From positions 1 to 33,583 of the forward strand of contig QPMI01000683.1 of the NCBI GenBank assembly GCA_004431415.1: a stretch of DNA of 33,583 nt, in the 5' to 3' direction. Numbering within the stretch: position 1 is the stretch's first letter; the number at the start of each line of letters is the position of its first letter. This DNA comes from Cyanophora paradoxa CCMP329. Taxonomy: Eukaryota; Plantae; Glaucophyta. This document shows, piece by piece, positions 9,032 to 33,583 of the stretch. The notes under the pieces are model-generated. The model was not told the origin of the DNA. It ran no database searches and saw nothing but the letters and a program-made list of their open reading frames with translations. Both the position numbers and the translations under genes were made by a program.

Positions 9032-9091
9032 TTAGCCCTGCCAATTTCGGGCGAAGCCTCTTCGGGCGAAGCCTCTTCGGGCGAAGCCTCT
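9032..9091 (+). repeat. Stack of element 5' termini: one family-B end (TTAGCCCTGCCAATT) plus three family-A ends (TCGGGCGAAGCCTCT x3)
   Basis: 15-nt units at 9032-9046, 9047-9061, 9062-9076 and 9077-9091; the same modules recur at 15744-15783 and 28507-28578. Confidence 0.9.
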
Positions 9092-10903
9092 TCCGTTGGT
9101 CGATGGTGAACGGCCCCATTTATTTTTTTTCCAGTCGAGTCCGATTGGTCCGAGCCGTTGGTCGATTGGTGAACGGCCCCATTTATTTTTTTTCCAGTCG
9201 AGTCCGATTGGTCCGAGCGTCCAGATTCGCAACCTCCGCAATGAAGGCGAACGATTTCGCATGTAACACAGTTGCCCACGGACGTTACATTGACGTGACA
9301 TTTATTTTTGGACTCGAGGTTCCTCTAAGACGACCGCTCTCCCGTGGGCGTCGCGCGAAATCGAATTTCCCTCCAGGATCAATTCCAGTATTTATACCCC
9401 GGGGCTCGATCGCGAGAGTCCAAAAAGTGGGACCCGGTCCCGCGACGAAAGCGCGCCAGGGACGCCCCAGAGCGCTCAGAATAACAGCCAAGAGCGCGCG
9501 CATTGCGGCAAGCTCGATTTCGGCCGCCGCCGACGCTCCAGTCGGAAGAGTCGGCCGAAATCTTGATCCTGCCGGTTCCGGCCGGTCCCGCGACGCATGC
9601 ATTCGATGCGTACTGGCGCGCATAGACATAGCAGGGCCTGCGCACTCCAGATATCCGCTTTTCGGAGCCGGAATAGTGAAGGCAGATGTCCGACAGCAAA
9701 AATTCGATCCTGTTCAATCCTGCACATGTAAGAGTCTGCTAGACCCCTAAAAAAACGATTAGGACCCCCGGTACAGTATTTCCCGGACCGGGTCCGATTT
9801 AGGAGCTCGGTCGGCGTGCGTGCCGGGGGGCGCCCTGCAAGCGCGACCAACGCTCTCAGCTAGTTCGATAATGCCCGGATCGCAACTCGCCGCGTCCCCG
9901 GGCGAGCGGTGTGAGCTTCCGGCGGTCGGCAAGCGACTGGCACCTTCGGAGAGCCTCCGGAGCGGCGTGCCGGTCAGCAGGCGGCAGCAACGCCTTCAGA
10001 AGTGATAGTATAGCATACAAGATCGTTCTGGAATGCCGCGAGACACTCCCCGCCTGCCGACCCGCACCGCCCTGCGGCCGCGTCGCGCAAGCCTCGTAGC
10101 GCGGGCGCCCAGCGAGCAGCAGCGGCATCTCCCTGCCTGCAGGACACTTTTGGTGCGCTGGTTTAGGTCGCGGGCAACAGTCGGTCGCGCGCAACAGTGC
10201 CGCTGACGAACGCGCAGGCCGATCGCCTGTCAGGAGCCTCTCCCGCTAGCTACTGCACCTGTAGATGCCACGGGGAGCCTCTCGGCTGTCCTACCATGCG
10301 GGTTTGCGGTCCGCGCGTCCGAGCGGCCAGCAGCAGCCGGGCGGCACGTTGGATTCGCCAGCCAACCTTCGGCCGGCGAGCTTTTCCGGCGTAGATAGCC
10401 TACAGCCGCCGGAAACAGCGTCCCGGGCTCCTTTTGCAGGCGTCCGCGCGCCTCGTCGGCTCACTGCCTCGGCGCACCTCGGACAACCGACAGCTGCGCG
10501 CCCAGGTGCGGCGCCGCCCGTCGTTCCTCGCGCAGAAAAGGATGTTTGGAGGATCGCGCATGCTTAGGGCTCGTCCTGACGCTGTTTCGCACAGGTCGGC
10601 CGGCTGCGTGCGGATTGCTTGCACCGTCGAAGGCGGACGACGCACCGCGCACGCGCAACGCTCTGCATCGTCTCTCCGGTCGATCCTGTCGCAGGCGAGC
10701 CGCGCCCGCTGCCGCGCTGCGCCCGAGCACCGACCCCCGCCGCAGTTTCATGGTCGCGCGGCCGCACCCGTGCGCTCCCGCCCAATCGCTGCGCATAGCC
10801 GTGATCCTCGTCTCAGATGCTCGCGAAACGGCCGCGCGGGAGCGGGTCCGCCGCCGCTCCTTCCCCCCTCGCGGTGCTGGAGCTAAGCTAAGCGGGTGCT
10901 CGC

Positions 10904-11835
10904 CCAGGTACGCGGGGACCTTAGGGGAGGGAGAATCAACTTTCGGCCGACCACGTAGGCTTATAGAGGGCTTCAATACGAGTTTAAAAAGCATAGTCTC
11001 CGGTCCGGCAGATCACTTTTAGAGACGACTTCCTGGCACCGTTGCCGGGCCGCTGTGCCACGGGAATCGCTGCCGCGGGCGCGTTCTCTTATCCCGCGCA
11101 TTAATCTGCATCTAACCTCAATCCTGGAACTCGCAGATCTTGCAGGCGAGCTCTCAACGCGAAACGGCTGAGGAGCTCCGGGCGTTTCGGGTGCGCGCTC
11201 GCCAGGGCGGCGATTCCTCCCAAAATTTTCTTAGCGGAGGCAGCTCCTCTGAGGGAGTAGAGTACGGGGAACCGCCTTTCGACCCCCTTCCATTCCGTGA
11301 GGAGCTTCCTTTGCGGATCTTGCGCCAGGGCCAGGGCGCCGCTCTTAAGCCCCATCAATCATCTTAAATGTCTCTTCAATGCGCTTCTCACATATTTTTG
11401 CCTCCCAGATTGTCGGGGATCGATCTGGCGCCCTCGTGGAGGCCGTGGCGGTCGGGGACGGCGTGCGCCGCCTCCAGGTCCGCGGGGACCTTAGGGGGGG
11501 GAGAATCAACTTTCGGCCGACCACGTAGGCTTATAGAGGGCTTCAATACGAGTTTAAAAAGCATAGTCTCCGGTCCGGCAGATCACTTTTAGAGACGACT
11601 TCCTGGCACCGTTGCCGGGCCGCTGGGCCACGGGAATCGCTGCCGCGGTTCCGCTCTCTTTCCCCGCGCACTAGCCTGCATCTAATCTCGAGTTCTGCTT
11701 GTTCAGATTTCGCAGGCGAGATCCCCACGCGAAACGGCTGAGGAGCTGCGCGCTTTTCTGGTGCGCGCTCGCCAGACCGCGGCGCCGCTCTTAAGCTCTT
11801 TGCATAATCTCAAATGACTCTTCAATGCGCGCTTC
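10904..11835 (+). repeat. Internal direct duplication, 570-bp offset (10904-~11390 vs 11474-~11835)
   Basis: About 170 bp nearly identical (CGCGGGGACCTTAGGGG...GGAATCGCTGCCGCGG), then diverged; the second copy lacks ~125 bp. Confidence 0.9.
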
Positions 11836-13065
11836 GACGTGCTTCTAGATCGCCCGGTTCTGAACGCCCCCCGCCTGACCTTATTCTGACATTATTCTGA
11901 CACTATCCCCTAGGACGGACCTCCCGACCCGTCCCTGGCCACCGGAGGCGCGCCGGACCGCCGGAACTGCGCGGCCCGACGGCGACGGGTACGGGCAAGA
12001 GGCGCGTACCCCTACCGGGGGGTACATGATTTCTCAGTGACCGTCCTTCAGGTCCTCATTTCTCGGCACGGCGGCGGCGGCGGGCGGCTCCGCGCGGCTT
12101 CCCGTGCGCGTCTTGGCATGGCCAATCCACACGCCAAGCGCGGCGCCCGGCGCCGCAGCCAGCGAGGAGCGCGGGCCCGAGATCTCGCCTGGAGAACCCT
12201 CTGGGCCGCCGCGCTCCTCTGCGCCTCCCCTATTCCCGCGCGTGAGGATGCGCGGAGGTCGCTAGGATGATTCTTTGTCTAAATGTGCAGTAAACATGCA
12301 GCGCGATGGTCGCTTTCGGCACAGCGGGGCAGTTTTCGCACGCGCCGTCCCGCGGAGCGGCGCTGGGGGCTTCGCGGCTTCTATACGCATCTCTACTCGA
12401 TATAGAATGTCCGTGGCATGCTGCGCGCCGGGCGGGAGTTCCGGGGAATGCATTCCGCAGCGAAAAGTATATGCAGCCGGTTCAAATTTGGCGGCCTGCT
12501 GTGAACGCACCGGCTCATCTCCGGCTTCTGAAACTTGCATATTTGGAATCAGAAGCTTCAAAATAGGCTGGGTGCTTAATCCCAGGTCGATACGCGAAGA
12601 GGGCGCGATCCGCGACTCGGCCATGAACATGATGATGATCATGATGATGATTTGCATGACACGACATCAGCGGTTTACACTCGACCTGCGCATTTTACAT
12701 TTTACGAAAAACCATAAATATCCAGAAGGGTGTAGATGGGGGTTTTCGAGGGTGCCGAAGACGATGGGCGCGTTTCCGCGGCCAGCCGATTAAAGCCTGA
12801 ACCGGTATTCAAGATTCGCAGTAATGAGGGCCCCCTATTGCTCCTAGCGTCATTTCGCCCCGCCCGTTCGCAGCCAGCTTCTGCAGCTCCAAATATAAGT
12901 CATTCAGATGCTATTAAGAAATAATGCATGCTTGGAAGCCCGCTCGGAGTTCAAATCACGAGCCCCGCACCCCCTCGAGCCCTTGGCCCCCGCGTGCTCA
13001 GTCTGCAGATCAGCTAGCTTGGTTCAAATCGGTGCGGTGACAAGACATGGGGCCCGGGACGCGGG

Positions 13066-13172
13066 CTGGGGAAGAGAAGAGAGGGGGGGGGGGGGGGGAG
13101 GGAGGCGGGAGGGGAGGGGGAGGGGAGGGGAGGGGAAGGGAGCGGGCCGGGGGGGAGCGAATGGCGAGGGAG
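13066..13172 (+). repeat. G/A-rich polypurine tract (G-run and GGGGA repeats), G-quadruplex-capable
   Basis: Long G homopolymer from 13083 and repeated GGGGA units, just beyond the stop codon of the minus-strand cargo ORF. Confidence 0.8.
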
Positions 13173-13192
13173 GGCCGGGCTTCTAGAGCCTA

Positions 13193-14447
13193 CTACCGCC
13201 GGCGCTTCGGCGTGGCGGCGGCGCCCGCGAGGGCGGGGGCGGGGCGCTTGCCGTTGCGGGGCGCGGCGGGGGCATGGGAGGGGGCGCGGCGCTTGCCGTT
13301 GCGCGGCGCGGCGGGGCGGTGGGGCGCTCGAAGATCGCCTTGCGGTGATCGTCCCTGAGGCAGGTGCCCTCGGTCAGCGGGCCCGGCTCGCTGAAGCGGG
13401 ACGGGGGGCGGGCGTCGGCACTGGACGGCGCCGGCGAGACGGAGGCGCTGCGGGCGGCGGATCAGCTCCGCGGCCGGCGCGGGGGCGGGCGGGGCGGGGG
13501 CGCGGGCCTCGAGGGGCGGGCGTCGGGCGAGGGCGCCGTCCGCGCGGCCGCCGCTCGCGGGCGCGGCCGCGCGGCGTTGGAGGCTGCGCCCCGGGAGGCA
13601 GCGGCAGAAGGCCACCCTCGTACTCCTCGCTCCCCTCTCCAGGTCCGTCGTGGGGCTTGGGCGCCGTGGGCGGCTGAAATCTCATTCTCGGCGGCCCAGG
13701 CGCGGCCGTCGGCCGGTGGACGGGGTGCGCGCCGATCACGACGGCGCCCGGCAACACCGCTTTCACCGGCACCGCCGCCGCCGGCGGGGCGCGGCTGAGG
13801 AGCGGCGGCGGAGACGGCGAAGGAGAGGCGGCGGCGGCGCCCGCCCCGCCCCGCAGGAGCTGCTCCTCCAGCTCGCGGACCCGCCGGGTCAGGCGCTCGA
13901 TCTCCGTTCGGGACCCCTCGCAGCTGCCGCACGCCACGCCGATCGGTGCGCCGTCCATGCTCTTGCGCCGTCGCGGCGCCGGCGTCCCGGCGGCCCCGCT
14001 CTGACTGCCCGCCTGTTGCTCCGCATGCAGGCGCTGCTGCTCCCGGAGCAGCGCATTCGCCTCCCTCAGCAGCTCCTCCAGCGTCCGGACCCTGTTTTCC
14101 AGTGCGTGCGCCCTCCCCCGCGCCCCCTCCCATCCAGCGTTTAATGCGTTCGTCTGCTCCCGCAGCGTTTCGCATCCGGGGCAGCTCTTTCCCGCTCCGA
14201 GATGTTTCAGGAAAGCGTCGGCCGAATCTGTATAGGCTTCTCCGAACTCCGGCCCAGACAGCGGCGGGAAGAGGGAGAGCGGGGCCGCCGGGCTGGCTGC
14301 TGCAGCGGGCGGGCTCGCCGCGGGCCAGGAGTCGACGGGAGAGGTGTTCATGTCTGCGCGGCGGCGGCGGACGCGGCGGCGTCAGCAGGGCGCTCGGGGC
14401 GGCCGCGCGTGCGGGGCGAGGCCCGGGGCGGCCGCACCGAGGTCCAT
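13193..14447 (-). CDS. Cargo gene of the TIR element: two CxxC+coiled-coil modules, Pro/Ala-rich tail, basic C-terminus; probable frameshift in the 3' part
   Basis: ORF 13374-14351 has CPGC-ETLREQ...LEELLREAN and CGSC-EGSRTEIERLTRRVRELEEQL. Candidate first exon ATG GAC CTC G (14447-14438) plus an 84-bp GT..GCTGAC..CAG intron (14437-14354) joins in frame. An alternative frame ends RNGKRR...TPKRRR* at 13193. Confidence 0.55.
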
Positions 14448-15753
14448 GGGATCGTAGGGCACGTCGCTGCTGCTGTAGAGAGCGAGCTCCGTACCGCCAC
14501 GCTCGGGCGGGCTCTCTGCGCGCGGGCGGATCGAATCCTACACGCACGCGCTGCGCCGCCGGCGGGCTCACCGAAGTGCTGCGCGATGCCTCCGACGTTG
14601 CTGGGGCCCGCCGCGCTGCTGCTGCTGCTGGCGCTCGCGTGCTCCGCGCTGGGGCCCGCTGCGAGCGCTAGCGCGTGCGTGAGGCCGCGGCACGCGTGCG
14701 GCGCTGGAACGGGCGCCGCTCACGCAAGAACGATGCGCTCTGAGCCAGCATGAGGCACGGAAGCTCGATCTGGAGCGTGGAACTCGCTCCCGCTGCGTCT
14801 AAGTCAGGGCGGCGTGGCGGGAAGTCGACCTGGGGCCGTTCGCGACCCGAACAAGCGCGCGTACGTGGCTCTGATGCATACTGAGATGTTCCAGATGCTT
14901 CTGGAGCGGCTGGGGCGCCCGCCGGCCCCGCTCCCTGGAAATCTGCGTGTCGCTCCTCACGCATGGCAGACCCCCGGGAACTATCGATGAGACAAAGTCT
15001 AGTTAGATCACGAACCGCTCGTTTCACTAGCGTGTGCATGGGGATCTGCCATGGCTGACCCGGGCCAGCGCGCCTTCGCTCCCAACCGGCCCGCGGCCGC
15101 TTTCGAGGCGTTTGGTTGCTTCCCCTTGCGCTTCCCGGTTGGCTCCTTCATTGCCGCAAGTTGTTGCGAGCCTAGCTGCACGCTAGCTACGTGCTCGGCG
15201 GCGCGCGCCCGGCTTTGCTGTACCCTGTTTTTGGACTTCGCTAATCGTTTTTTTAGGGGTCTAGCAGACTCTTACGACAGTCCTGGGCATCATTCCGCGC
15301 GCCCACGCTGCGGCGCATGCGCGGAACTCTAGTATAAGCATCTGAGATGTAGAAGAAGCCTTCCGTACGCTTTCTAAATGCGCCGGGCCGCGACGACCCA
15401 GCCGACCCCGAACAATCGATCCTGGCAACTGCAGCGATTCCCCTAATAGCATAATTATATTCTCTCAGGAAATCTCCTCTCAGGACAATTGAACTCCTCC
15501 CAGAATTATATTCCCTCTCAGCAGCCCTCCCCTCCCCTCTCCCTGCCCCACCAACTCAAAGACAGCCACGACGGGCCGCGATGATTAAGGGGGACGCGAG
15601 GTGGGCCGCTGAGGCTTCGCCCGATGTTTGGGACCCGCAGGGGCCCAGGGCTTGGGTCGGCGAACGAAATTAACGGTCACGTCAGGGTCACATCCGTCCC
15701 GCGTGTTCGCCCGCTACCCATCCTGAATCAATTCACGCACTCACCTGCCAATT

Positions 15754-18564
15754 TCGGGCGAAGCCTCTTCGGGCGAAGCCTCTTCCGTTGATCGATGGTG
15801 AACGGCCCCATTTATTTTTTTTCCACTCGAATCCGATTGGTCCGAGCGTCCAGAGTCGCAACCTCCGCAATGAAGGCGAACGGTTTCGCATGTAACACAG
15901 TTGCCCGCGGAGGTTACATAGACGTGACATTTATTTTTGGACTCGAAGATCCCCTAAGACGACCGCTCTCCCGTGGGCGTCCCGCGAAAATCGAATTTCC
16001 CTCCAGGATCAATTCCGATATTTATACCCCGGGGCTCGATCGCGAAACTCCAAAAAGTGGGACCCGGTCCCGCCCGGTCCCGCGACGAAAGCGCGCCAGG
16101 GACGACCCAGAGCGGTCAGGATGACAGCCAACAGCGCGCGCATCGCTGCAAGCTCGATTTCGGCCGCCGTGGACGCTCCAGTCCGAAGAGTCGGCCGAAA
16201 TTTTGATCCAGCCAGTTCCGGCCGGTCCCACGACGCGCGCATTCGATGCGTACTGGCGCGCATAGACATAGCAGGACCTGCGCACTCCAGATATCCGCTT
16301 TTCGGAGCCGGAATAGCGCAGGAAGGTGCCCGATGGCAAAAATTCGATCCTGGACAGCCCCGGACATCTTTCCGCGCGCCCACGCCGCGGCGCATGCGCG
16401 GATCAATAGTATAAGCATTTGAGATGTAGCAGAAGCCTTCCGCACGGTCTCTAAATGCGCCGGGCCGCGAGGACCCAGCCGACCCCGAAAATTCGATCCT
16501 GGACGGACCTGCACATCTTTCCGCGCGCCCTCGCGTCCTCACCCACGCCCATCGCTACAGTATTCATTTGAAATCTAAACGAAGCCTTCTGCAAGCTCTG
16601 TGGCCGCGACAGAGCACGAGAACCCAGCCGACGCCAAATTTTCGATCCTGGACAGGCCTGCACATATTTCTGTGCGCCCTCGCCTCCGCAGCCCTGGACA
16701 TCGATCCTGTACGCATCCGAGATTCTGTTTAAGCGATTCATAAGCGGTGTGCATGCGCCTGGCCACTAGAACCTCGCCCCTCCCCTCGACAATCTCGTCT
16801 CAATTTCCTCAAGACCTCGCGATCGAGCTCAACTACAGCTAGCTGATTGGCAGATTATTATATACTCACCAATTCCCCTTATTCCATAATTATATTGTGT
16901 CATGGCAACTCCACTCAGGACAACTCCCCCCATAATTATATTCCCTCTCAGCAGCCCTCCCCTCCCCTCTCCTTGCCCCACCGACCCAGCAACAGCCACG
17001 ACGGGCCGCGATGATTAAGGGGGGCGCGAAGAGGGCCGCTGAGGCTTCGCCCGATGTTTGGGACCCGCAGGGGCCCAGGGCTTGTCCGTAGGTCGATGGT
17101 GAACGCCCGATTCTATTTTTTTTCCAATCGACTCCAATTGGTCCGAGCGTCCAGAGTCGCAACCTCCGCAATGAAGGCGAACGGTTTCGCATGTAACACA
17201 GTTGCCCGCGGAGGTTACATAGACGTGACATTTATTTTTGGACTCGAAGATCCCCTAAGACGACCGCTCTCCCGTGGGCGTCCCGCGAAAATCGAATTTC
17301 CCTCCAGGATCAATTCCGATATTTATACCCCGGGGCTCGATCGCGAAACTCCAAAAAGTGGGACCCGGTCCCGCCCGGTCCCGCGACGAAAGCGCGCCAG
17401 GGACGACCCAGAGCGGTCAGGATGACAGCCAACAGCGCGCGCATCGCTGCAAGCTCGATTTCGGCCGCCGTGGACGCTCCAGTCCGAAGAGTCGGCCGAA
17501 ATTTTGATCCAGCCAGTTCCGGCCGGTCCCACGACGCGCGCATTCGATGCATACTGGCGCGCATAGACAAAGCAGGACCTGCGCACTCCAGATATCCGCT
17601 TTTCGGAGCCGGAATAGCGCAGGAAGGTGCCCGATGGCAAAAATTCGATCCTGGACAGCCCCGGACATCTTTCCGCGCGCCCACGCCGCGGCGCATGCGC
17701 GGATCAATAGTATAAGCATTTGAGATGTAGCAGAAGCCTTCCGCACGGTCTCTAAATGCGCCGGGCCGCGAGGACCCAGCCGACCCCGAAAATTCGATCC
17801 TGGACGGACCTGCACATCTTTCCGCGCGCCCTCGCGTCCTCACCCACGCCCATCGCTACAGTATTCATTTGAAATCTAAACGAAGCCTTCTGCAAGCTCT
17901 GTGGCCGCGACAGAGCACGAGAACCCAGCCGACGCCAAATTTTCGATCCTGGACAGGCCTGCACATATTTCTGTGCGCCCTCGCCTCCGCAGCCCTGGAC
18001 ATCGATCCTGTACGCATCCGAGATTCTGTTTAAGCGATTCATAAGCGGTGTGCATGCGCCTGGCCACTAGAACCTCGCCCCTCCCCTCGACAATCTCGTC
18101 TCAATTTCCTCAGGACCTCGCGATCGAGCTCAACTACAGCTAGCTGATTGGCAGATTATTATATACTCACCAATTCCCCTTATTCCATAATTATATTGTG
18201 TCATGGCAACTCCACTCAGGACAACTCCCCCCATAATTATATTCCCTCTCAGCAGCCCTCCCCTCCCCTCTCCTTGCCCCACCGACCCAGCAACAGCCAC
18301 GACGGGCCGCGATGATTAAGGGGGGCGCGAGGTGGGCCGCTGAGGCTTCGCCCGATGTTTGGGACCCGCAGGGGCCCAGGGCTTGTCCGTAGGTCGATGG
18401 TGAACGCCCGATTCTATTTTTTTTCCAATCGACTCCAATTGGTCCGAGCGTCCAGAGTCGCAACCTCCGCAATGAAGGCGAACGGTTTCGCATGTAACAC
18501 AGTTGCCCGCGGAGGTTACATAGACGTGACATTTATTTTTGGACTCGAAGATCCCCTAAGACGA
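15754..18564 (+). mobile_element. Family-A copies: two stacked 5' ends (15754-15783), then bodies 15784-17084, 17085-18385 and a truncated 18386-18564 (1301-bp period)
   Basis: Near-identical units at an exact 1301 offset (ORF pairs 15973/17274 and 16890/18191). Complete bodies end GAGGCTTCGCCCGA-tgtt-TGGGACCCGCAGGGGCCCA hairpin-GGGCTTG|T. Confidence 0.88.
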
Positions 18565-19975
18565 CAAGCCCTGGGCCCCTGCGGGTCCCAAACATCGGGC
18601 GAAGCCTCAGCAGCCCACCTCGCGCCCCCCTTAATATTAATCATCGCGGCCCGTCGTGGCTGTCTTTGGGTCGGCGGGGCAGGGAGAGGGGAGGGGAGGT
18701 TTGGTACATAATTAATAAGAGGAGAATTAAGAGGAGCTCGAGGAGGCGCTGGGTCGGTGGGGCAGGGAGAGAGGCGGGGAGGGGTGCTGAGAGGGAATAT
18801 AATTATGGAAGGAGTTGTCTTGAGAGGAGTTGTGCCGAGAGAATATTATTATGTGATAAGGGGAATTGGTGCAGCTGAGAGAGAATATAATGAGGGGAGG
18901 AGTGGTGCTGCCAATCAGCTAGCTGTAGTTGAGCTCGAGGCCCTGAGGGAATTGAGAGGAGATTGTCGAGGGGACAGGCGAGGTTCTCGCGGCCAGGCGC
19001 ATGCGCAGAGCTTATAAATCGCTTAAACAGAATCTCGGATGCGTACAGGATCGATGTCCAGGGCTGTGGAGGCGAGCGCGCGCGGAAATATGTGCAGGCC
19101 TGTACATGTCCAGGATCGAAAATTTGGCGTCGGCTGGGTTCTCGTGCTCTGTCGCGGCCACAGAGCTTGCGGAAGGCTTTGTTTAGATCTCAAATGAATA
19201 CTGTAGCGATGGGCATGGATGAGGACGCGAGGGCGCGCGGAAAGATGTGCAGGTCCGTCCAGGATCGAATTTTCGGGGTCGGCAGGGTCGTCGCGGCCCG
19301 GCGCATTTAGAGACCGTTTGAAAGGCTTCTTCTACATCTCAAATGCTTATGCTATTGATCCGCGCATGCGCCGCGGCCTGGGAGCGCGGAAAGTTGCCCG
19401 GGGCTGTGCAGGATCGATTTTTTGCCATCGGGCACCTTCCTGCGCTCTTCCGGCTCCGAAAAGCGGATATCTGGAGTGCGCAGGCCCTGCTATGTCTATG
19501 CGCGCCAGTACGCATCGAATGCACGCGATGTTGGACCGGGAGGGACCGGCAGGATCATATTTTGGGCCGACTCGCTGGACTGGAGCTTCGAGGGCGGCCG
19601 AAATCGAGCTTGTCGCGATGCGCGCGCTCTTGGCTGTCATTCTGACCGCTCTGGGGCGTCCCTGGCGCGCTTTCGTTGCGGGACCGGGTCCCACTTTTTG
19701 GGGTTTCGCGATGGAACCCCGGGGTATAAATACCGGAATCGATCCATGAGGGAAATTCGATTTTCGCGCGACGTTGATGGGAGAGCGGTCCGGCGGGTAC
19801 CAGTCACGTCTATGTCACGTCGGAGACCGTTCGCCTTCATTGCGGAGGTTGCGAATCTGGACGCTCGGACGAATCGGACTCGAGTGGAAAAAAAATAAAT
19901 GGAAACGTTCACCATCGATTTACGGAAGAGGCTTCGCCCGGTTCACCATCGATTTACGGAAGAGGCTTCGCCCGA
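18565..19975 (-). mobile_element. Full-length family-A copy, inverted
   Basis: 3' end CAAGCCC at 18565; 5' end AGAGGCTTCGCCCGA ending at 19975, with a 34-bp tandem duplication of the 5' region (~19907-19974). Confidence 0.85.
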
Positions 19976-21429: not shown

Positions 21430-22147
21430 TGAGGGGATCCCGGAGGAGTGGTGCTGCCAATCAGCTAGCTGTAGTTGAGCTCGAGGCCCTGAGGAAATTG
21501 AGAGGAGATTGTTGAGGGGACGGGCGAGGTTCTCGCAGCCATGGCCAGGCGCATGCGCAGAGCTTGCGACACGCTTAAACAGAGTGTCGAATTCATATAG
21601 TTTTGATGTGCAGGGCTGCGGAGGCGAGGGCACGCGGAAATATGTGCAGGCCTGTGCAGGATCGAAATTTTAGCGTCGGCTGGGTTCTCGTGCTCTGTCG
21701 CGGCCACAGAGCTTGCGAAAGGCTTTAAGAAGCTCTCAAATGAATACTGTAGCGATGGGCATGGATGCGGACGCGAGGGCGTGCGGAAAGATGCACAGGT
21801 CCGTCCAGGATCGAATTTTCGGGGACGGCTGGGTCCTCGCGGCCCGGCGCATTTAGAGACCGTGCGAAAGTCTTCTTCTACATCTCAAATGCTTATACTA
21901 TTGTTCCGCGCATGCGCCGCGGCGTGGGAGGAGTTTGTTGAGGGGACGGGCGAGGTTCTCGCAGCCATATGCATGGCCAGGCGCATGCGCAGAGCTTGCG
22001 ACACGCTTAAACAGAGTGTCGAATTCATATAGTTTTGATGTGCAGGGCTGCGGAGGCGAGGGCACGCGGAAATATGTGCAGGCCTGTGCAGGATCGAAAT
22101 TTTAGCGTCGGCTGGGTTCTCGTGCTCTGTCGCGGCCACAGAGCTTG
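21430..22147 (-). repeat. Two partial internal fragments of family A (21444-21925, 21927-22147)
   Basis: Near-identical to 20376-20847. Confidence 0.85.
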
Positions 22148-22187
22148 TCTAACCGACACGACGATGCGCAGAGAAGTGCGCCACACG

Positions 22188-24752
22188 ATGGCGGAACAGG
22201 AGTTCAACCCGTTCGCAACGCCAGCCCAGCCTGGCGCTGCTGAGGAAGGCGCTGGCCAGGAAGGCGGAGACGCCGATGGCGATGAGCTCATGGACGGCCT
22301 CGGCGAGATCGACGATGCTGGCAACGGCGCAGATCTCGGCGAGCAAGGCGCTGGTGCAGAAGCCGGAGAGCAGGGCGCTGCGGTGAACGCCGGCGAAGAT
22401 GAAGACTATGCCGGCGACGCCGACGACGATGACGCGGCAGGGCCGAGCGGCCCAGTTGTGCGAGCGCCGACGGGCGGAGAGCGACGGGACAAGTCGCAAC
22501 CGATAAACAAGACCTTCCGCGTCCCGAAGTTCATGGTTGCGGTCGTCTTCGAACCGCTCGACCTAGTCCCGACCAAGTACGCGGGGACCCAACTCTGCCT
22601 CAACGGCGACGGGCTAGTCCCACTGAATGAACGCAAACATATGGTTCAAACGGTCCGTCATGACTCGGCCGAGCGAGCTCCCGCCCACGCTGAGAATGCG
22701 CGACAGGTGATCTCAGAACGGAACATCGCCCACGGCGGAGTTCGCACCAACTTCCCCTCAAAGGGGTGCGTCGCAGTACTGGCAACGCCGGACGTGATGA
22801 CAGATGTCACATATGCGAAAGCTCGCAAGGTACGCCCGATCTGACGATACGCCCGTCCCCAAGTCTCCTCGCTCACCCCTCGCAGTGGACCAAGGACACG
22901 GCTGCGAAGCTGCGCGTCGCTACATGCCTCGCGGTGAAATTGCAGAACAAGACGAATCGCCGAGACGAAGTGACGATCTACCAGATCGATTCGCCAGTAG
23001 TGGTAAGACGCCGAGCGAGCCGGAACGACTTCCCCATAACTGTGCATGCGCAGAGAGCCCCGAAACCATGGATGCTGCTCGATGACAAGGAGCACGCGCC
23101 AATGATCCTCATCGACGGCGCCCCGGTGTTCTCTACCAAGGGCGGTCTCCAGCCGGACGGCAACTTCTCCGCGAACACGCGCCGCGATGTGCTTCATCTC
23201 TTCCGCACACTGGCGCGCCAGGTGGAGCACGACGCGACGAAGTCGCTCAAGACCGCGACGCGGGAGAAACTCACGCCGCTGCAAGACGGCACGGTGTGAT
23301 GATCTAACCGGCCACGCGGCGAACGCTAACCCACCGCTGGTACGCAGCTGGAGGCAGAATGCCTCGGCTTTCGAGTCCTCGGATGGGCCGGCACGCCAGC
23401 GGCGGTACAACAGAACATGATCATGCGCGAGCCTCCGCGCATCGCCCTCACCACCGGCAACGTTCACCTTGCCAACAAGTACGTTGCCGCGCACGGCGAC
23501 CGGGGCTGACCTGAGGCTGACAGCAATCCGCGCTCGCAGACTGATCGAACTCAGCAAGGCGAACCTGCTGCGGTTCGAGTCGTGCCCCATCACGGTGAAC
23601 CTCGCAACCGAGGCCCCCGAACTCCACACCTGCGGCACCTTTGTTCTGGCTCTGCATGCGGCGACAGCGCAACTCCCGGTGAGCCGAGAGTCCTTTTTCC
23701 CCTCCCGTCCCCGCGGACGCAGAAGGCTGAAGGCTTGGCAGCTGCCCACCATCCTCAAGGAAGTGGCGCGCAACCCGGCAGAAGTGACGCTGGTCTACCA
23801 CCAATGCAGCTACAGTCACGGCCAGTCACCACCCGACGGCGACGTGCTGCACCTCCTTATCAAGAAGGAGAAGGTGGCTGCCTGGGAGGCGGCGATGAAG
23901 CCCGCCGCGCCTGGCGTGCGCTACTCGTGCGGCGAGACGCTTCACCTCTCAATGCAGGTGGCGGACCACACGGCCTCGCTCTGGCGTGTCCGGCCGCCGG
24001 CGAGCCTCACCCCGAAGGCGCTCCAGAACTTCAGCCCCGCTGGCTGCCGCCGTCACCGCCTCCAAGCCTACTTCGAACACAAGAGCTCGAAGTGCCCCGG
24101 CACGGACTGGAAGCCGCGGACGAGCGGCAAGGCGGACGCTGAGGCGTCAGCAGCGTCGTTGGCTGGCCAGCAGCCGGGCTCAGCAGCCAGCAGCCGCGGC
24201 CGCGGACGCGGCGGCGCAGCAGCTAACGCTGGGCGCGGGCGCAGGAGCAAGCGCCAGGAAGAGGCGGACCCCCGCGAGACGTTCTTCCCCAAGGAGGCCA
24301 AGCGCCCTCGGGTGCTGCAGCCATTTGTACCTCCCACGGCCCCGCCAGCGCCAGCCTGGGGCGGCAGCAGCGCAACGCCGACCGACCTCTTGGCCGTCGT
24401 GGCCGGCGTCCCCGCAGCATCCTGGCCGCCGCTGCAGCTGGGCATAGACTCGGCAGCAGTGACGTCAGCGGCGTTGGCGCTGAGCAGCAACGATACCCGT
24501 GGCCGCAACTCGCGGGGCCGCGGGACGCGTGGACGCGGCGGACCCCACGGCGGGCGCGGAGAACACACTCGGGTGGAGGTGGCGGCGCCTCAACCCCCGA
24601 TCCCCATCCTCTCCCCCCAGCTCCCGGGGGGGTTCCCGGGATTTATGATGCAGCAAACGCCGCAGCAGGTGGCACAGCAGATGCAGATGAACCAGGCGCA
24701 GGCGATGTATTTTGGCGCCATGCTTGCAGCCCAGCAGCCAGGCCGCAGTTAA
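22188..24752 (+). CDS. Spliced gene, ~797 aa, unknown function: acidic N-terminus, globular middle, RG-rich and Q/M-rich low-complexity C-terminus
   Basis: Exons 22188-22829, 22886-23293, 23348-23478 and 23540-24752. Introns of 56, 54 and 61 bp have GT donors (GTACGC, GTGTGA, GTACGT), branch motifs GCTCAC/GCTAAC/GCTGAC and CGCAG acceptors; splicing restores one open frame. A fourth in-frame intron is possible at 23679-23741; alternative ATG at 22164. Confidence 0.8.
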
Positions 24753-25489
24753 AGACTAGAGAGGCCTCGAGGATTGTACGTGCTAGTGTGAAGGACACTG
24801 GCAATTTGTGCGTACAGGCAGGGGAGGGCGGGCCCATGCCGGGGGGGGAGGGGGTAGACTTGGGAGGGGGCGGACAGCTGGAGTCGGGGAGCAACGGAGC
24901 GGGAGTGCCCAGCCAAAGTGGAGGCCTAATCCTCTCTGAACCCCCGGCCCTAGCGGGGCCGGAGGCACCAAGCTCCTCACCTCTCCACTCAGGCAGTACC
25001 ACCCCACCAGCTTTATCACCCTCGCTCCATCCCCACCTATTAGCATAGGACTAGCCCAGGGGTAGAGTTAGATGGATAGCCAGTTATATAGGTATATGTT
25101 TAGGCACAGCACACGAGAGTCCTCATATTCTCTTCCTGGATATAGTTTTCAGTGAGGGTATGGTCGACGTTACGACTTCAGTGTTGTACGGTTGTGCTAA
25201 TGCAAATTTGATAAGTGCCAAATTTTCGATCCTGGACAGGCCTGCACATATTTCCGCGCGCCCTGGCCTCTGCATCCCTGGACATCGATCATGTATGCAT
25301 TCTAGACTCTGTTTAAGCGATTCGCGAGCTCTGCGCATGCGCCTGGCCGCGAGAACCTCGCCCCTCCCCTCACCAATCTCCTCTCAATTTCCTCAGGCCT
25401 CGAGCTCAACTACAGCTAGCTGATTGGCAGCACCACTCCTCCCCTCATTATATTCTCTCTCAGCTCAACCAATTACCATAAATACATAA

Positions 25490-26911
25490 TTGCAAGGGGG
25501 GGTACCCCTCCCTTGCTCCCCTGGTGAATTGGTGCGGCGTACTTTCCGTGTTAGCAATTTTTCTAAGATGAGATTCTTTGCATGCGCTCTCGTATAGGTG
25601 TGATCGCATGGTAGCCGCTGCGAGCGACCGAAAAAAATGCACCGGCGGGGCTGTGCAAACATGTTGAGATAGCACCTCACCAGCTTTTGCTATAAGCGCC
25701 GGACCACGTGCTCCTGATTGCTCTCAATGAGCTTTTCAAACTTTGTCATACATGCATGGGCTCGACAAGAGGCGCGCGGCGTGCTAGGCCGCGTCAAGTA
25801 CCTTTGTACTTGCCAGTCCGAGACTCGATCTGCCACAAACTCCTGAGAGTTTGAGTTTTTGCTGGGTACAGGAAACAGCTGCTTTGCACATGGCACGGCG
25901 CGGAGGCCGAGATCTAGAGCTTGGTTCCGCGCGCGGAGTTGAAGAAGAGGAGTACCAGCTGTGTTCGGAACCGCGCTCCGACCCGCGCGGCTGCCATCCG
26001 TTGCGGCAAGCACTTCGCTTCGCAAATGCACTCGTGAGCAAGTCCTGCCATGCCGTGCGGGGCTGGGCCTCGCCCTGGGCGCGCTGACGTGACGTCTCGG
26101 CGCTGCGCAGGCTGTCCGGCTCTGCCGATCCGCAGGCTGCGCAGGCTGTCCGGCTGTCCGCTCTGCCATCCGCTCTGCCCGCTGCTTCAGCTTGCCCGCG
26201 CGGCTACGACGCGCTTGCCCGCTCGGGCGCCTCGCGCACTCCTCGGCGCCACGCGCGCGTATCTTGATCATGACCCGCGGCCGGCGCTCTGTAGCAGATG
26301 GTGGCGGAGTTGCTCCAAGTACTCCGCGCCGGGTTGGACCTCGCCCCCGCGCCGCCGCTGTCCGCGGCGGGGCGAGCTCCGCCGCCCCGCCCGCTGCCTC
26401 GGCTTCGTCGACTCCAGGTTCGCCCCGCCGCCGCTGCTGCACACGTGCACCTCACCCAGCCGCCGCCGCTGGCCCAGCCCCGGCGCCGCCGCTGTCCGGG
26501 GCGAGCTGACGCCTCGGCTCTGCGCAGGCCTAGGCGGTGTACAGGGCCGGGGGCCCAGCGCCACCTGCCGGTCCGCCTGCTTCCGGGCCCGCCGCCCCGC
26601 CCTCTGCCTCGGGTTCGTCGACTCCAGGTTCGCCCCGCCGCCGCTGCTGCACACGTGCACCTCACCCGGCCGCCGCCGCTGGGCCCAGCCCCGGCGCCGC
26701 CGCTGTCCGGGGCGAGCTTACGCCTCTCTGCGCAGGCCTAGGCGGTGTGCAGGGCCGGGGGCCCGGCGCCACCTGCCGGTCCACCTGCTTCCGGGCCCGC
26801 CGCCCCTGTACCCTGTATTCCAACCCTGAATTTGTACAAGTACCCCCCCTTGCACCTCCGCGCGCGGCCCGCACTTGCCGCACTTGCACACGGCCGGGCG
26901 CGGTCTGCTAG
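25490..26911 (+). mobile_element. Family-C non-autonomous Helentron/Helitron2-like (DINE/HINE-like) element, 1422 bp
   Basis: 15-bp asymmetric inverted repeat TGCAAGGGGGGGTAC at 25491-25505 and 26840-26854; 5' local hairpin 25492-25516; 3' stem CCGCGCGCGGCC/GGCCGGGCGCGG (26858-26903, 11 of 12 pairs); ends GCTAG. It splits host CATAA|TTATATTCTCTC with no duplication. Confidence 0.85.
26343..26805 (+). repeat. ~210-bp GC-rich tandem repeat (~2.2 units) inside element C
   Basis: TTCGTCGACTCCAGGTTCGCCCCGCCG at 26404 and 26614. Confidence 0.9.
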
Positions 26912-27223
26912 TTATATTCTCTCAAGACAACTCCTCTCAGGCCAACTCCTCCCATAATTATATTCCCTCTCAACAGCCCTCCCCTCTTCCTAGACCTTCC
27001 CCACCGACCCAGCGCCTCCTCAAACTCCTCTTAACTTTCTCCCCTTATGCCCTGCAGGAAAAGTGCTCCCATTATTATATTCCATCTCACCAGCCCTCCC
27101 CTCACCTCTCCCTGCCCCACCGACCCAGCAACAGCCACGACGGGCCGCGATGATAAAGGGGGACGCGAGGAGGGCCGCTGAGGCTTCGCCCGATGTTTGG
27201 GACCGGCAGGGGCCCAGGGCTTG

Positions 27224-28506
27224 TAGACGTGACTGGAACCCGGCGAACCGGCGAAATTATTTTTTTTTCCACTCGAGTCCGATTGGTCCAAGCGCCCTGG
27301 TTCGCAACCTCCGCAATGAAGGCGAACGGTCTCCGACGTGACATAGACGTGACTGGAACCCGGCGAACCCGCGCAAAAATCGAATTTCCCTCCAGGATCA
27401 ATTCCGGTATTTATACCCCGGGGCTCGATCGCGAAACTCCAAAAAGTGGGACCCGGTCCCGCGACGAAAACGCGCCAGGGACGCCCCAGAGCGGTCAGAA
27501 TGACAGCCAAGAGCGCGCGCATCGCGACAAGCTCGATTTCGGCCGCCCTCGAAGCTCCAGTCCAGAGAGTCGGCCCAAAATTTGATCCTGCCGGTCCCTC
27601 CCGGTCCAACATCGCGCGCATTCGATGCGTACTGGCGCGCATAGACATAGCAGGGCCTGCGCACTCCAGAAATCCGCTTTTCGAAGCCGGAACAGCGCAG
27701 GAAGGTGCCCGACGTCAAAAATTCGATCCTGCACAGCCCCGGGCAACTTTCCGCGCGCCGACGCCGCGGCGCATGCGCAGATCTAGAGCAATAGTATATG
27801 CATTTCAGATGTAAAAGAAGCTTTCCGCACCGTCTCTAAATGCGCCGGGCCGCGAGGACCCAGCCGTCCCTGAAAATTCGATCCTGGACGGATCTGTGCA
27901 TCTTTCCGCGCGCCCTCGAGTCCTCACCCATGCCCATCGCTACAGTATGCATTTGAGATGTAAACAAAGCCTTTCGCAAGCTCTGCCGCCGCGACAGAGC
28001 ACGAGAACCCAGCCGACGCCAAAATTTCCAGGACTGGCCTAGGCCTGCACATATTTCCGCGCGCCCTCGCCTCCGCAGCCCTGGACATCGATCCTGTATG
28101 CATTCGAGACTCTGTTTAAGCGTTTCGCAAGCTCTGCGCATGCGCCTGGCTGCGAGAACCTCGCCCCTCCCCTTGACAATCTCCTCTCAATTTCCCCATG
28201 ATCAGGACCTCAAGCTCAACTACGGCTAGCTGATTGGCAGCACCATGGCCACTCCTCCTCTCATTATATTCTCTCTCAGCTGCAGCAATTCCCCTTATTA
28301 CATAATAATATTCTCCCAGGACAACTCCTCTCAGGACAACTCCTCCCCTCTAGCTAATTATATTCCCTCTCAGCAGCCCTCCACTCCCCTCTCCCTGCCC
28401 CACCGACCCAAAGACAGCCACGACGGGCCGCGATGATTAAGGGGGAAGCGAGGTGGGCGGCAGAGGCTTCGCCCGATGTTTGGGACCCGCAGGGGCCCAG
28501 GGCTTG
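27224..28506 (+). mobile_element. Family-A body with rearranged 5' part and intact 3' end
   Basis: Ends GGGCTTG at 28506, joined directly to TCGGGCGAAGCCTCT. Confidence 0.8.
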
Positions 28507-30119
28507 TCGGGCGAAGCCTCTTCGGGCGAAGCCTCTTCCGTAGGTCGATTAGCCCTGCCAATTTCGGGCGAAGCCTCTTCCGTTAACACAGCACCCCACG
28601 GACGTTACATTGACGTGACACTTATTTTTGGACTCGAAGCTCCCCTAAGACGACCGCTCTCCCGTGGGCGTCGTGCGAAAATCGATTTTCCCTCCAGGAT
28701 CAATTCCAGTATTTATACCCCGGCTCGATCGCGAAATCCCAAAAAGTGGGACCCGGTCCCGCGACGAAAGCGCGCCAGGGATGTCCCAGAGCGGTCACAA
28801 TGACAGCCAAGAGCGCGCGCATCGCGGCAAGCTCGATCTCGGCCGCCGCTGATGCTCCAGTCGGAAGACTCGGCCGAAAATTGGATCCTGCCGGTTCCGG
28901 CCGGTCCCCCGACGCCCGCATTCGATGCGTACTGGTGCCCATAAACATGGCAGGGCCTGCGCACTCCAGATATCCGCTTTTCGGAGCCGGAACAGCGCAG
29001 GAAGGCACCCGGCGGCAGAAATTCGATTCTGCACAGTCCTGGGCATCTTTCCGCGCGCCCATGCCGCAGCGCATGCACGTATCAATAGTATAAGCATTTC
29101 AGATGTAGAAGACGCCTTTCGCACGGTCTCTAAATGCGCCGGGCCGCGAGGACCCAACCGTCCCCGAAAATTCGATCCTGGACGGACCTGCGCATCTTTC
29201 CGCGCGCCCTCGCGTCCCAACCCATGCCCATCGCTACAGTATGCATTTGAGATCTAAACGAAGCCTTCCGCAAGCTCTGTGGCCGCGACAGGGCACGAGA
29301 ACCCAGCCGACGCCAAATTTTCGATCCTGGACAGGCCTGCACATATTTCCGCGCGCCCTCGCCTCCTCAGCCCTGGACATCGATCCTGTATGCATCCGAG
29401 ATTCTGTTTAATCGATTTATAAGCTCTGCGCATGCGCCTGGCCGCGACAACCTCGCCCGTCCCCTCCACAATCTCCTCTCAATTCCCTCACGGCCTCGAG
29501 CTCATGATCAACTACAGCTAGCTGATTGGCAGCACCACTCCTCCCCTCATTATATTATCTCTCAGCTGCAGCAATTCCCCTTATTGCATAATTATATTCT
29601 CTCAGGACAGCTCCTCTCAGGACAACTCCTCCCATAATTATATTCCCTCTCGGCACCACTCCCCTAACCCTAGGCCTTCCCCACCGACCCAGCGCCTCCT
29701 CAAGCTTCTGTTAATTCTCCCCTTATTATATAGCTAGTTGCATGCCCTGCACAAAAACTGCTTCCCTAATTATATTTCCTCTCACTAGCCCTCCCCTCCC
29801 CTAGGCCTCTCCCTGCCCCACCGACCCAGCAACAGCCACGACGGGCCGCGATGATTAAGGGGGGCGCGAGCGGGGCGGCCGAGGCTTCGCCCGATGTTTG
29901 GGACCCGCAGGGGCCCAGGGCTTGTCGGAAATCCAGATCGGCGAGCGAAATTCCTGTAACGTCCGAGAAACGTCCGTACCCCGTGTTCATCGTGGATCAA
30001 TTCACGCACACACCTCGACAGTGACATCACGCAATTTTCCATCAAGTTCTCTCATGGATCAAATGTCAGACTTGTACGCCGACATGTCCGGACGTCTCGA
30101 GGAATTCCGATCGTGGCTT

Positions 30120-32141
30120 TTAGCCCTGCCAATTTCGGAAATCCAGATCGGCGAGCGAAATTCCTGTAACGTCCGAGAAACGTCCGTACCCCGTGTTCAT
30201 CGTGGATCAATTCACGCACACACCTCGACAGTGACATCACGCAATTTTCCATCAAGTTCTCTCATGGATCAAATGTCAGACTTGTACGCCGACATGTCCG
30301 GACGTCTCGAGGAATTCCGATCGTGGCTTCTCGAGGGAGACCGCTCTCCCATGGCCGTTGCGCGAATATCGAATTTCGGCTCTCCCGTGGGCGTCACGCG
30401 AAAATCGAATTTCTCTCCCGAACTAATCCCGGTATTTATACCCCGGTTCGATCGCGAAACTCCAAAAAGTGGGACCCGGTCCCGCCCGGTCCCGCGACGA
30501 AAGCGCGCCAGGAACGCCCCAGAGCGATACAGAATGAGAGCCGATGGCGCGCGCACCGCTGCAAGCTCGATTTCGGGCGCCGCCGACACTGCAATGCGAA
30601 GAGTCGGCGGAAACTTTGACCCAGCCGGTCCCGCCCGGTCCCGCGACGCGCGCAATCGATGCGTACTCACGCGCATAGACATAGCACGGCCTGCGCACTC
30701 CAGCGATCCGCTTTTCGGAGCCGGAACAGTGCAGGAAGGCACCCGGCGGCAAAAATTCGATCCTGCACAGGCCCGGACATCTTTCCGCGCGCCGACGCCG
30801 CGGCGCATGCGCCGAACAATAGTATACACATTTGAGATGTAGACAAATCCTTCCGCGCGCTTTGCAGATGCGCCGGGCCGCGAGGACCCAGCCGACCCCG
30901 AAAATTCGATCCTTGACGAACCTGCCCATCTTTCCGCGCGCCCTCGCATCCTCACGCATGCCCATCCCTACAGAATTCATTTGAGAGCTTTTCCAAGCTT
31001 TGCGCAAGCACTGTGGGGGCGAAAGAGCACAAGAACCCAGCCGACGCCAAAAATTCGATCCTGCACTGGCCTGCACATATTTCCGTGCGCCCTCGCCTCT
31101 GCAGCCCTCCACATTGATATTATATGCATTCGAGGTACTTTGCAAGATATTCGTAAGCTCTCCAAATGCGCCTGGCCACAGGAACCTCGCTCCTCCCCTT
31201 AATGATGACGAGCTCGAGCTCGAGGTGAGATCTAGGGGGGAAAGGTATATATATGTATATTTCCCTCTAGATCTCACCTCGATCTCGCAATCGATCTCCC
31301 CTTGAGCTCGAGTCTCACCTCGAGCTTGAGCTATTTGTTTTCCCCCTCTAGATCTCACCTCGAGCTCAAGCTCCACCGACCAATATATATATATATATAT
31401 GGCGGCAATGAATAGGAGGCGGCGGGCCGGGGGGGCTTCGAGAAAGCCCAACCTTTCGCACACGCAAGCTTAAGAACCCACGGCTCGGCGGTGTACATGT
31501 ACATGTAGAGGCGCGGCGAAGAGCTGCAACGGCCTGGACTCCGGGAGCGGAAGCGCGGCGCGCAGCCGCCGCCGGGCCGGGCGCCCTGCCAGGCTGGCTC
31601 GCCGGGCGGAGCTCAGCCTCGGATCCGGAGCTCAGCGGCCTGGCGGAATGACTTGGTGGATGGTGAGGAGGCGCCAGGGACGGCGGCGCGGCTCGCCGGA
31701 CGGAGCGGAGGCGCTCGGGGCAGCCGCCGGGCGCCATGGCGCGCCGGGTGGGGCGCAGCCTCGGAGCGCGGCGGCCTTGCGACGTGGCTCAACGGCTTGG
31801 CCGACGGAGCGGAGGCCCCAAGGGCGGCGGCGAGGCTCTCAGGGCGGAGGGTTGCAGCTCGCGGCCGGATGCTTGGCGGGCGGCCGCGGGCCATGGCGGA
31901 GCAGAGGATCGGAACGCTCGGGCGAGGCGGACCCGCAGGCTATAGCTAGGCACTGCGGCACAGAGGCGGCGGATCCGGAGCGGCGTGCAGCCTACGGTGC
32001 AGGGCCAGGTCTACGCCTACGTATATAATACCGAGCGCTGCCCACTTAGCCTCATTGACGCTAAGACAGACTCTCTGAGACAGGGAGGCTGAGATAGCAG
32101 GCATGCATTGGCAGGGCTTACCACACGTGAGTGTGGGCTTG
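30120..32141 (+). mobile_element. Family-B Helitron2/Helentron-like element, 2022 bp
   Basis: 12-bp asymmetric inverted repeat AGCCCTGCCAAT (30122-30133) / ATTGGCAGGGCT (32107-32118); hairpin CCACAC-GTGA-GTGTGG (32121-32136); end GCTTG|T. Its core 30330-31200 is a diverged homolog of the A core. Confidence 0.85.
31210..31400. repeat. Palindromic cluster plus (TA)n microsatellite in element B
   Basis: GAGCTCGAGGTGAGATCTAG (31216-31235) has two inverted partners (~31260-31282 and ~31339-31367); (AT)n at 31383-31400. Confidence 0.85.
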
Positions 32142-33583
32142 TGGTGAACGGCCCCATTTATTTTTTTTCCACTCGAGTCCGATTGGTCCGAACGTCGAGG
32201 TTGACAACCTCCGCAATGAAGGCGAACGGTCTCCGACGTTACATAGCTGGACACGGACGTAACACTTATTTTTGGAATCGTGGCTCCCCTCTAATTCCGT
32301 CCGCACTCCTGGGTCCCCGCCCGAAAATCGAATTTCCCTCCAGGATCAGTTCCGGTATTTATACCCCGGGGATCGATCGCGAAACCCAAAAAGTGGGATC
32401 CGGTCCCGCCCGGTCCCGCCAGGAAAGCGCGCCAGGGACGTCCCAGAACGGTCAGGATGACAGCCAAGAGCGCGCGCATTGCGGCAAGCTCGATTTTGGC
32501 CGCCGCCGACGCTCCAGTCCGAAGAGTCGGCCGAAAATCTGATCCTGCCGGTTCCGGCCGGTCCCCCGACGCGCGCATTCGATGCGTACTGGCGCGCATA
32601 GACATAGCAGGGCCTGCGCACTCCAGATATCCGCTTTTCAGAGCCGGAACAGCGCAGGAAAGTTCCCGATGGCAAAAATTCGATCCTGCACAGCCCCGGG
32701 CAACTTTCCCTGCGCCCACGCCGCGGCGCATGCGCGGAACAATAGTATAAGCATTTGAGATGTAGAAGAAGACTTTCGCACGGTCTCTAAATGCGCCGGG
32801 CCGCGAGGACCCAGCCGTCCCAAAAAATTCGATCCTGGACGGACCTGTGCATCTTTCCGCACGCCCTCGCGTCCGCATCCATGCCCATCGCTACAGTATT
32901 CATTTGAGAGCTTCTTAAAGCCTTTCGCAAGCTCTGTGGCCGCGACAGAGCACGAGAACCCAGCCGACGCTAAAATTTCGATCCTGGACAGGCCTGCACA
33001 TATTTCCACGCGCCCTGGCCTCTGCAGCCCTGCACATCAAAACTATATGAATTCGACACTCTGTTTAAGCGTGTCGCAAGCTCTGCGCATGCGCCTGGCC
33101 ATGGCTGCGAGAACCTCGCCCGTCCCCTCAACAATCTCCTCTCAATTTCCTCAGGGCCTCGAGCTCAACTACAGCTAGCTGATTGGCAGCACCACTCCTC
33201 CCCTCATTATATTCTCTCTCAGGGACAGCTCTTCTCTCTCAGGGACAGCGAATTTCATTATTAAATTCTCTCAGCACAGCTCCTCTCAGGAAAACTCCTC
33301 CCATAATTATACACTCTAGCTGATTGCATGGCAGCACCACTCCTCCACTCATTATATTCCAACTCACCTGCACCAATTCCCGTAATTTCATAATTATATT
33401 CTCTCAGGACAGCTCCTCTCAGGACAACTGCTCCCATAATTATATTCCCTCTCGCCACCCCTCCCCTAGGCATCCCCTCTCTTTGCCCCACCGACCCAGC
33501 AACAGCCACGACGGGCCGCGATGATTAAGGGGGGCGCGAACAGGGCCGCTGAGGCTTCGCCCGATGTTTGGGACCCGCAGGGG
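32142..33583 (+). mobile_element. Remainder of the family-A copy whose 5' end is at 28522-28548; 3' end cut by the window edge
   Basis: Resumes TGGTGAACGGCCCC; 3' inverted repeat at 33551-33564 followed by the start of the hairpin. Confidence 0.85.

Follow-up and report, generated by a model that had tools for sequence, protein, structure and literature searches.

We have analyzed a stretch of 33,583 nucleotides from the glaucophyte Cyanophora paradoxa CCMP329 (contig QPMI01000683.1), termed the window below. Its DNA is GC-rich and eukaryotic, and self-alignment reveals approximately 12 whole or partial copies of a 1.3 kb unit on both strands, from position 9047 to the end of the window. This apparent satellite contains three families of element, named A, B and C. 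They are very probably non-autonomous Helitron2/HLE2 transposons, presumably mobilized by a RepHel protein, and are nested one within another into a satellite-like array. The sample is a single window, with one complete copy each of B and C. A preliminary description had viewed positions 9032-33583 as a nested colony of rolling-circle elements from three families. Nesting is established because the empty sites can be seen intact, but part of the array arose by plain tandem and inverted duplication, and the span also includes a putative DDE-type element with terminal inverted repeats (TIRs) and a gene-bearing insert.

Three families with a common end structure

The ends of the three families have the same layout, and the motifs and coordinates reported for them earlier are correct. 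Each element begins with T and a short repeat, the exact complement of which lies inside the other end, followed by a hairpin, GCTTG or GCTAG, and then a T of the host DNA. A is ~1.3 kb long and starts with T, with a 14 bp repeat at offset 0 from the 5' end; the 3' partner stops 30 nt short of the terminus and is followed by a hairpin and GGGCTTG. B (~2.0 kb) starts with TT, and has a 12 bp repeat at offset 2, a 3' partner that stops 23 nt short of the terminus, a hairpin and GGGCTTG. C (1.42 kb) also starts with TT, with a 15 bp repeat at offset 1, a 3' partner that stops 57 nt short of the terminus, a hairpin and GCTAG. When 20,000 random trials were performed on non-repeat DNA of the window, an exact repeat of at least 12 nt was found in such a position three times. 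The presence of three unrelated motifs in one asymmetric layout, with the boundaries of B and C set independently by empty sites (below), supports assignment to the Helitron2/HLE2 class, as the preliminary description had proposed.

The complete C element lies on the plus strand at 25490-26911, with its repeat at 25491-25505 and 26840-26854, a 3' hairpin at 26858-26903 and a CTAG end. B is at 28549-32141 (plus strand), with the repeat at 28551 (and again at 30122) and at 32107-32118, and the 3' hairpin at 32121-32136. A complete A is found inside it at 28564-29924 (plus strand), with the repeat at 28564-28577 and 29881-29894 and the hairpin at 29899-29917. Hairpin strength was expressed as a z value relative to shuffled sequences. 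The 3' hairpin of B is significant (z = -2.9). C has a strong 5' hairpin (z = -3.1) that contains its 5' repeat, and a weak 3' hairpin (z = -1.2 to -1.7). The 3' stem of A is conserved in seven copies.

There are ten exact copies of the A 5' motif, at 9047, 9062, 9077, 15754, 15769, 28507, 28522 and 28564 on the plus strand and at 19975 and 21429 on the minus strand, plus one at 19941 with a single mismatch. Eight complete 3' ends (repeat, hairpin and GGGCTTG) terminate at 15654, 17084, 18385, 27223, 28506 and 29924 and, on the minus strand, at 18565 and 19976. Seven of the eight have an adjacent T, and at 15654 ~11 nt of the flank have been lost. B heads are located at 9032, 28549 and 30120, with a partial head at 15745 and a single 3' end at 32141. 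Over the terminal 45 nt of seven A copies just 3 of 270 positions differ (99% conserved), while the bodies of A copies from separate lineages are 82-96% identical; the center of the body has about three diverged 149 bp repeats. Retention of the ends while the bodies drift argues against plain satellite drift, and would be expected of cis-acting signals for transposition.

The motifs had been described as unrelated between the families. That is true of these terminal sequences, but the bodies of A and B are homologous, for B includes an A-like core of ~820 bp (30379-31199) with 79-86% identity to A. In a midpoint-drawn tree B lies outside the group of A copies, and on the basis of these alignments it is a sister family of A or a chimera with different ends. 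Beyond the core, the B segment 31210-31400 has nested inverted repeats (34 bp arms, 91% identical) and TA runs. C has an internal 210 bp tandem duplication at 26379-26806, with 95% identity.

Empty sites and target bases

The three insertions at 25490-26911, 28549-32141 and 28564-29924 can be excised in silico to restore sites that are found intact elsewhere, as had been claimed, and none leaves a target site duplication (TSD). Excision of A at 28564-29924 recreates the B head as it is found at 30120, with a T|T target. The other two targets are A|T: excision of B recreates an A head that is present five times in the window, and excision of C an A site that is also found at 15443 and 33382. 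Contigs of two public runs likewise contain the joint from 28548 to 32142 that lacks B, as expected because other A copies exist. All resolved junctions of A, B and C are N|T without a TSD. The predicted bias to N|T is therefore seen, but T|T is not strict; the target is T|T at every site 15 nt inside a resident head (below), B, C and two A copies are at A|T, and some other copies are at G|T. In contrast, a 3 bp TSD accompanies the TIR element that lies within this locus (9727-15276).

These data bear on the possibility that elements long dead gave rise to the locus as a satellite or an array of segmental duplications, in which the ends survive as relics. Copies are locally tandem or inverted, they are 97-99% identical in places, and the 149 bp subrepeats have a satellite-like character. 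Yet the insertions are positioned to a single base and have empty sites, the ends are far better kept than the bodies, and three motifs share one layout. We therefore regard such an origin as improbable.

A recurrent insertion site 15 nt inside resident heads

Three of the six resolved internal A insertions lie at +15 relative to the 5' end of a resident element. One is within A (head at 15769), where the inserted tail is followed by A position 16. The second is within B (28564), and the third is within a diverged B, termed B' (9047), with ~11 nt lost at the tail. Other A copies entered an A at about +150, at +195 (in reverse) or at about +1100, and a further two are joined head-to-tail (0). 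The insertions of B and C are at +27 and about +1120 of A, respectively. The +15 site of A and that of B each lie one base beyond the 5' repeat and have the sequence T|TC[CG]G (T|TCSG), resembling the start of A; most A targets begin with TC, as A itself does. There are 18 T|TCSG sites in B and 12 in A, and the three intact nests are at the +15 one. The binomial probability of three in six at +15 is 2e-4 if 46 T|TC sites are considered or 0.01 for 12 T|TCSG sites, values that are post hoc and based on a small sample of three nests. The case weakens to P = 0.005 (T|TC) or 0.06 (T|TCSG) if the two A-in-B nests are counted once. A description of the site as just behind the 5' hairpin was rejected, since in B it falls within the 5' arm of a weak stem.

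The independence of the two A-in-B nests can be assessed from their hosts. No difference separates the B heads at 28549 and 30120 over 210 nt, and A is present only in the first, so that the insertion at 28564 is recent. B' comprises a head at 9032-9046 (plus strand), host of the first A insertion, and a body beyond the A tail that ends with the partial B head 15745-15753 (together 15655-15753, plus strand); 64 of 78 aligned nucleotides of the body are identical to B (~82%). From this comparison the two nests are probably independent, unless the 210 bp duplication is an assembly error. That duplication, within 28549-30329, comprises the first 210 nt of B, 100% identical and beginning exactly at the 5' terminus, and it fixes the TT start of B. 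It stops in GTGGCTT, which resembles the true 3' end of B, and could have arisen when re-initiation was aborted or when B inserted into itself at T|C, or be an error of assembly.

It is quite possible, although we would not call it probable, that RepHel homes to resident 5' ends and integrates at a fixed offset of 15 nt whatever the family, so that ordered nesting builds satellite-like arrays. The cause could be protein at the resident end, resemblance of the site to an element start, or both. A rather less likely alternative is that the elements are of the HLE2 type, with stacked heads and tandem bodies arising mainly from slippage, unequal crossover, read-through during rolling-circle copying or aborted re-initiation at the nicked 5' end rather than from targeting of +15, which would be one start-like site among others. 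The array does include duplicated heads (34, 63 and 210 nt) and a tandem duplication of 1301 bp, the copy at 9047 has three heads but a single tail, two head-to-tail junctions are consistent with read-through, most A targets begin with TC, and three resolved A insertions are elsewhere than +15. However, duplication cannot place A within B, and at both 28564 and 9047 a B head precedes A and a B body follows it. Moreover, two heads and two bodies remain at 15754 when the 1301 bp duplication is removed, and the intact nests used +15 in spite of the other T|TCSG sites on offer.

In the nesting model that we favor, a RepHel from elsewhere in the genome would nick N|T at the 5' end of an element. 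One strand would be peeled off until stopped at the subterminal repeat and hairpin, and the freed strand, probably circular, would be joined at another N|T target, creating no TSD. Resident copies would be a frequent landing place, with A favoring the position 15 nt into the head of an A or a B. Heads would become stacked and bodies aligned when an insertion falls so close to the 5' end of a resident. A composite running from the outer head to the first tail could then leave a single tail with three heads, an explanation advanced for Fusarium (PMC5148889), and later tandem and inverted duplications would add to the satellite-like appearance.

Organization and later rearrangement of the array

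The first A copy (9047-15654, plus strand) has three stacked 15 nt heads at 9047, 9062 and 9077 and one 3' end. It contains a 63 bp duplication and an internal deletion, and is split by the TIR element. The heads at 9062 and 9077, and likewise that at 28522, have no matched tail within the window. The A-in-A nest at +15 (15754-18564, plus strand) has heads at 15754 and 15769 and bodies at 15784-17084, 17085-18385 and 18386-18564. Of the sites at which the first two bodies differ, eight fall within the initial 52 nt and five within the remaining 1250 nt. The segment 17085-17264 equals 18386-18565, so the third body begins exactly like the second. This pattern indicates a recent 1301 bp tandem duplication, reversal of which gives two heads and two bodies.

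Next is an inverted A with a 34 bp head duplication (18565-19975, minus strand), which entered a resident A at about +195 (G|T). Beyond it are rearranged A fragments (19976-22147, minus strand), the 3' part being head-to-tail with the preceding copy. These include a plus-strand piece (20841-21368) and the A head at 21429, which was inserted at about +1100 of its resident (A|T). Blocks near 19987-20847 and 32728-33583 are inverted with 97% identity. On the plus strand, a 3' part of A (25217-27223) hosts C, and its tail entered the next A at about +150 (A|T). That copy (27224-28506, plus strand) lacks a head, and its tail is head-to-tail with the head at 28507. The final copy (28507-33583, plus strand) has two stacked heads (28507 and 28522) and is split by B at +27; its body resumes at 32142 and continues past the end of the window. 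Head-to-tail A junctions are thus present in the chromosome at 28506|28507 and 19976|19975. These would be amplified by the outward-facing polymerase chain reaction that had been suggested as a test for circles, so that test is confounded.

Search for a RepHel partner

RepHel had been stated to be absent from the window, and we confirm this. Comparison with 151 RepHel proteins gave short, weak matches only (best E = 5e-4), none of them credible. With degenerate Rep-motif patterns, viral contigs yielded either no match or Reps of a phage-like kind. In a metagenome they found one HLE2 RepHel, in locus L015 (DUF6570, Helitron_like_N and PIF1). L015 (1287-7793) and L016-L020 carry HLE2-type RepHel genes of other eukaryotes, with ends unlike those of the window; L019 has a GIY-YIG gene downstream of the RepHel. 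Five RepHel loci compared with the window had nothing in common with it. An exact search of viral and metagenome contigs with the 3' end of A gave no matches, an Rfam search of the window found nothing, and the open reading frames (ORFs) of the window were absent, as exact sequences, from the protein collection searched.

Read depth was examined in four public runs, using as query a single 5,991-letter sequence that lacks the 5' end of C. In all four the A-core bins were 10 to several hundred times deeper than the B-specific bins, a ratio that is not a copy number. Judged by A-core depth, the A family is plentiful outside the window. A, B and C would presumably be mobilized in trans by a RepHel made elsewhere in the genome.

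A number of observations weigh against our interpretation. The window contains no Rep or Pif1 motif, and searches with the L015 RepHel gave no match that could be assigned to Cyanophora or that had the ends described here. The A|T and G|T targets depart from the T|T (or T|C) usual for Helitron2. The 3' hairpin of A is not above shuffles (z = -1.0), nor are its 5' end, which has only a 3 bp GAA mini-hairpin, or that of B, with its weak 7 bp stem. One A copy (9047) has three heads with one tail. Among the loose ends listed from the reads, none is at an element terminus, and sharp ends of dispersed copies throughout the genome would be an expectation based on this window. We nevertheless consider that the shared end structure, the empty sites lacking TSDs and the conservation of the A ends strongly favor nested Helitron2/HLE2 elements.

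Neighboring elements and genes

The element that splits the first A copy (9727-15276) is 5.55 kb long, with perfect, symmetric 35 bp TIRs, a 3 bp TSD (ACA) and a 570 bp internal duplication. It has an ORF of 325 aa (13374-14351, minus strand) that is coiled-coil-like, for which there was no family match and no usable Atlas match; no transposase was seen in the element. The 3.07 kb insert at 22148-25216 lies between oppositely oriented A fragments and holds a spliced gene, for which the EukProt model has 741 aa and which recurs nearly unchanged in at least five copies on separate contigs of C. paradoxa. Its ORF 23469-24752 matches five EukProt entries of C. paradoxa on five contigs. The gene (22188-24752), searched by one ORF, had no Pfam match and no usable Atlas match. 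The insert starts with T directly after GAGCTTG and has an AT-rich 3' end, without paired end repeats. It is probably mobile.

To the left of the array is a non-LTR (long terminal repeat) retrotransposon (375-6227, minus strand), with AP endonuclease, reverse transcriptase and RNase H in separate frames. The reverse transcriptase (2167-5214) has its best matches in the C. paradoxa gene set, and the retrotransposon has many relatives in the same genome. A 398 aa ORF (7162-8358) upstream on the same strand may be ORF1 of this element.

Comparison with known transposons

Helitron2/HLE2 elements have asymmetric repeats of 8-15 bp, the 5' repeat 0-2 nt from the end and the 3' repeat ~20-30 nt from the end (38-60 nt in HINE elements) above a hairpin, with a 5' T and no TSD (PMC3627910, PMC4067079). 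A, B and C correspond to this definition (Bao and Jurka 2013, PMC3627910; HELIANO, PMC11417382) in having asymmetric repeats (14, 12 and 15 bp respectively), a subterminal 3' repeat with a hairpin, a T start and no TSD. They differ in the use of A|T and G|T targets, in the 57 nt position of the C 3' repeat, and in having a clear 5' hairpin in C only. HINE, DINE-1 and Cg_HINE elements are likewise non-coding, with subterminal repeats, a 3' stem-loop and a satellite-like appearance (PMC4067079, PMC7492417), and the 149 bp central repeats of A resemble the HINE central tandem repeats of about 150 bp (PMC7492417). Here, however, whole elements nest to form the array, no microsatellite module is seen, and the flanks are not poly-T. 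Within HLE2, Helentrons are distinguished by an AP endonuclease fused to RepHel.

Other classes fit less well. The canonical Helitron1 Helraiser, for which the chemistry of nicking, strand displacement, 3' termination and joining has been demonstrated (PMC4778049), is similar in its N|T junctions, A|T targets and 3' hairpin; moreover A starts with TC and C ends with CTAG. Helitron1/HLE1 was rejected in view of the paired inverted repeats in all three families, the CTTG rather than CTRR ends of A and B, and the TT starts of B and C. Mobilization might instead be due to a Replitron-type or IS91-like HUH protein, or to a DDE transposase that works on the inverted repeats by cut and paste. The searches above gave no partner, and TSDs are also lacking in other HUH transposons. 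Replitrons resemble our elements in being HUH-type (presumably so here), in mostly having no TSD and in the palindrome at their right end. Yet they have short direct terminal repeats, where those here are inverted and asymmetric, and they were not detected in glaucophytes (PMC10288648). DDE transposons show symmetric terminal repeats and TSDs, as does the element at 9727-15276; a DDE transposon or miniature inverted-repeat transposable element was rejected because the 3' repeats lie 23-57 nt inside the end and there is no TSD. We consider mobilization by any of these other proteins very unlikely.

Helitron2-type elements and self-insertion of a fungal Helitron2 are known, so that surprise to a specialist is limited to fixed-offset nesting across families, seen in three nests. 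In a literature search conducted largely outside subscription papers, we saw no report of these elements from Cyanophora or another glaucophyte, and none of a fixed offset or of cross-family nesting. Little is known of how Helitron transposases select their targets, and arguments for the conversion of Helitrons into satellites usually start from internal repeats; at this locus whole elements make an array by nesting, and the junctions are resolved to a single nucleotide. Should the +15 preference prove general in the genome and between families, one could test directly whether integration is steered by RepHel bound to the left end of a resident. In the absence of such a rule, the result is a clean description of three glaucophyte HLE2 families that are new. 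Insertion of Helitrons in the vicinity of others has been described (PMC12477314), and FoHeli of Fusarium oxysporum shows self-insertion near the 5' end, multiple heads on one tail and joined ends (PMC5148889). The A family shares all three properties. In FoHeli, however, the extra heads vary in length (31, 65, 73 and 85 nt) with one nest (PMC5148889), whereas in the Cyanophora array the +15 position recurs and crosses from one family to another.

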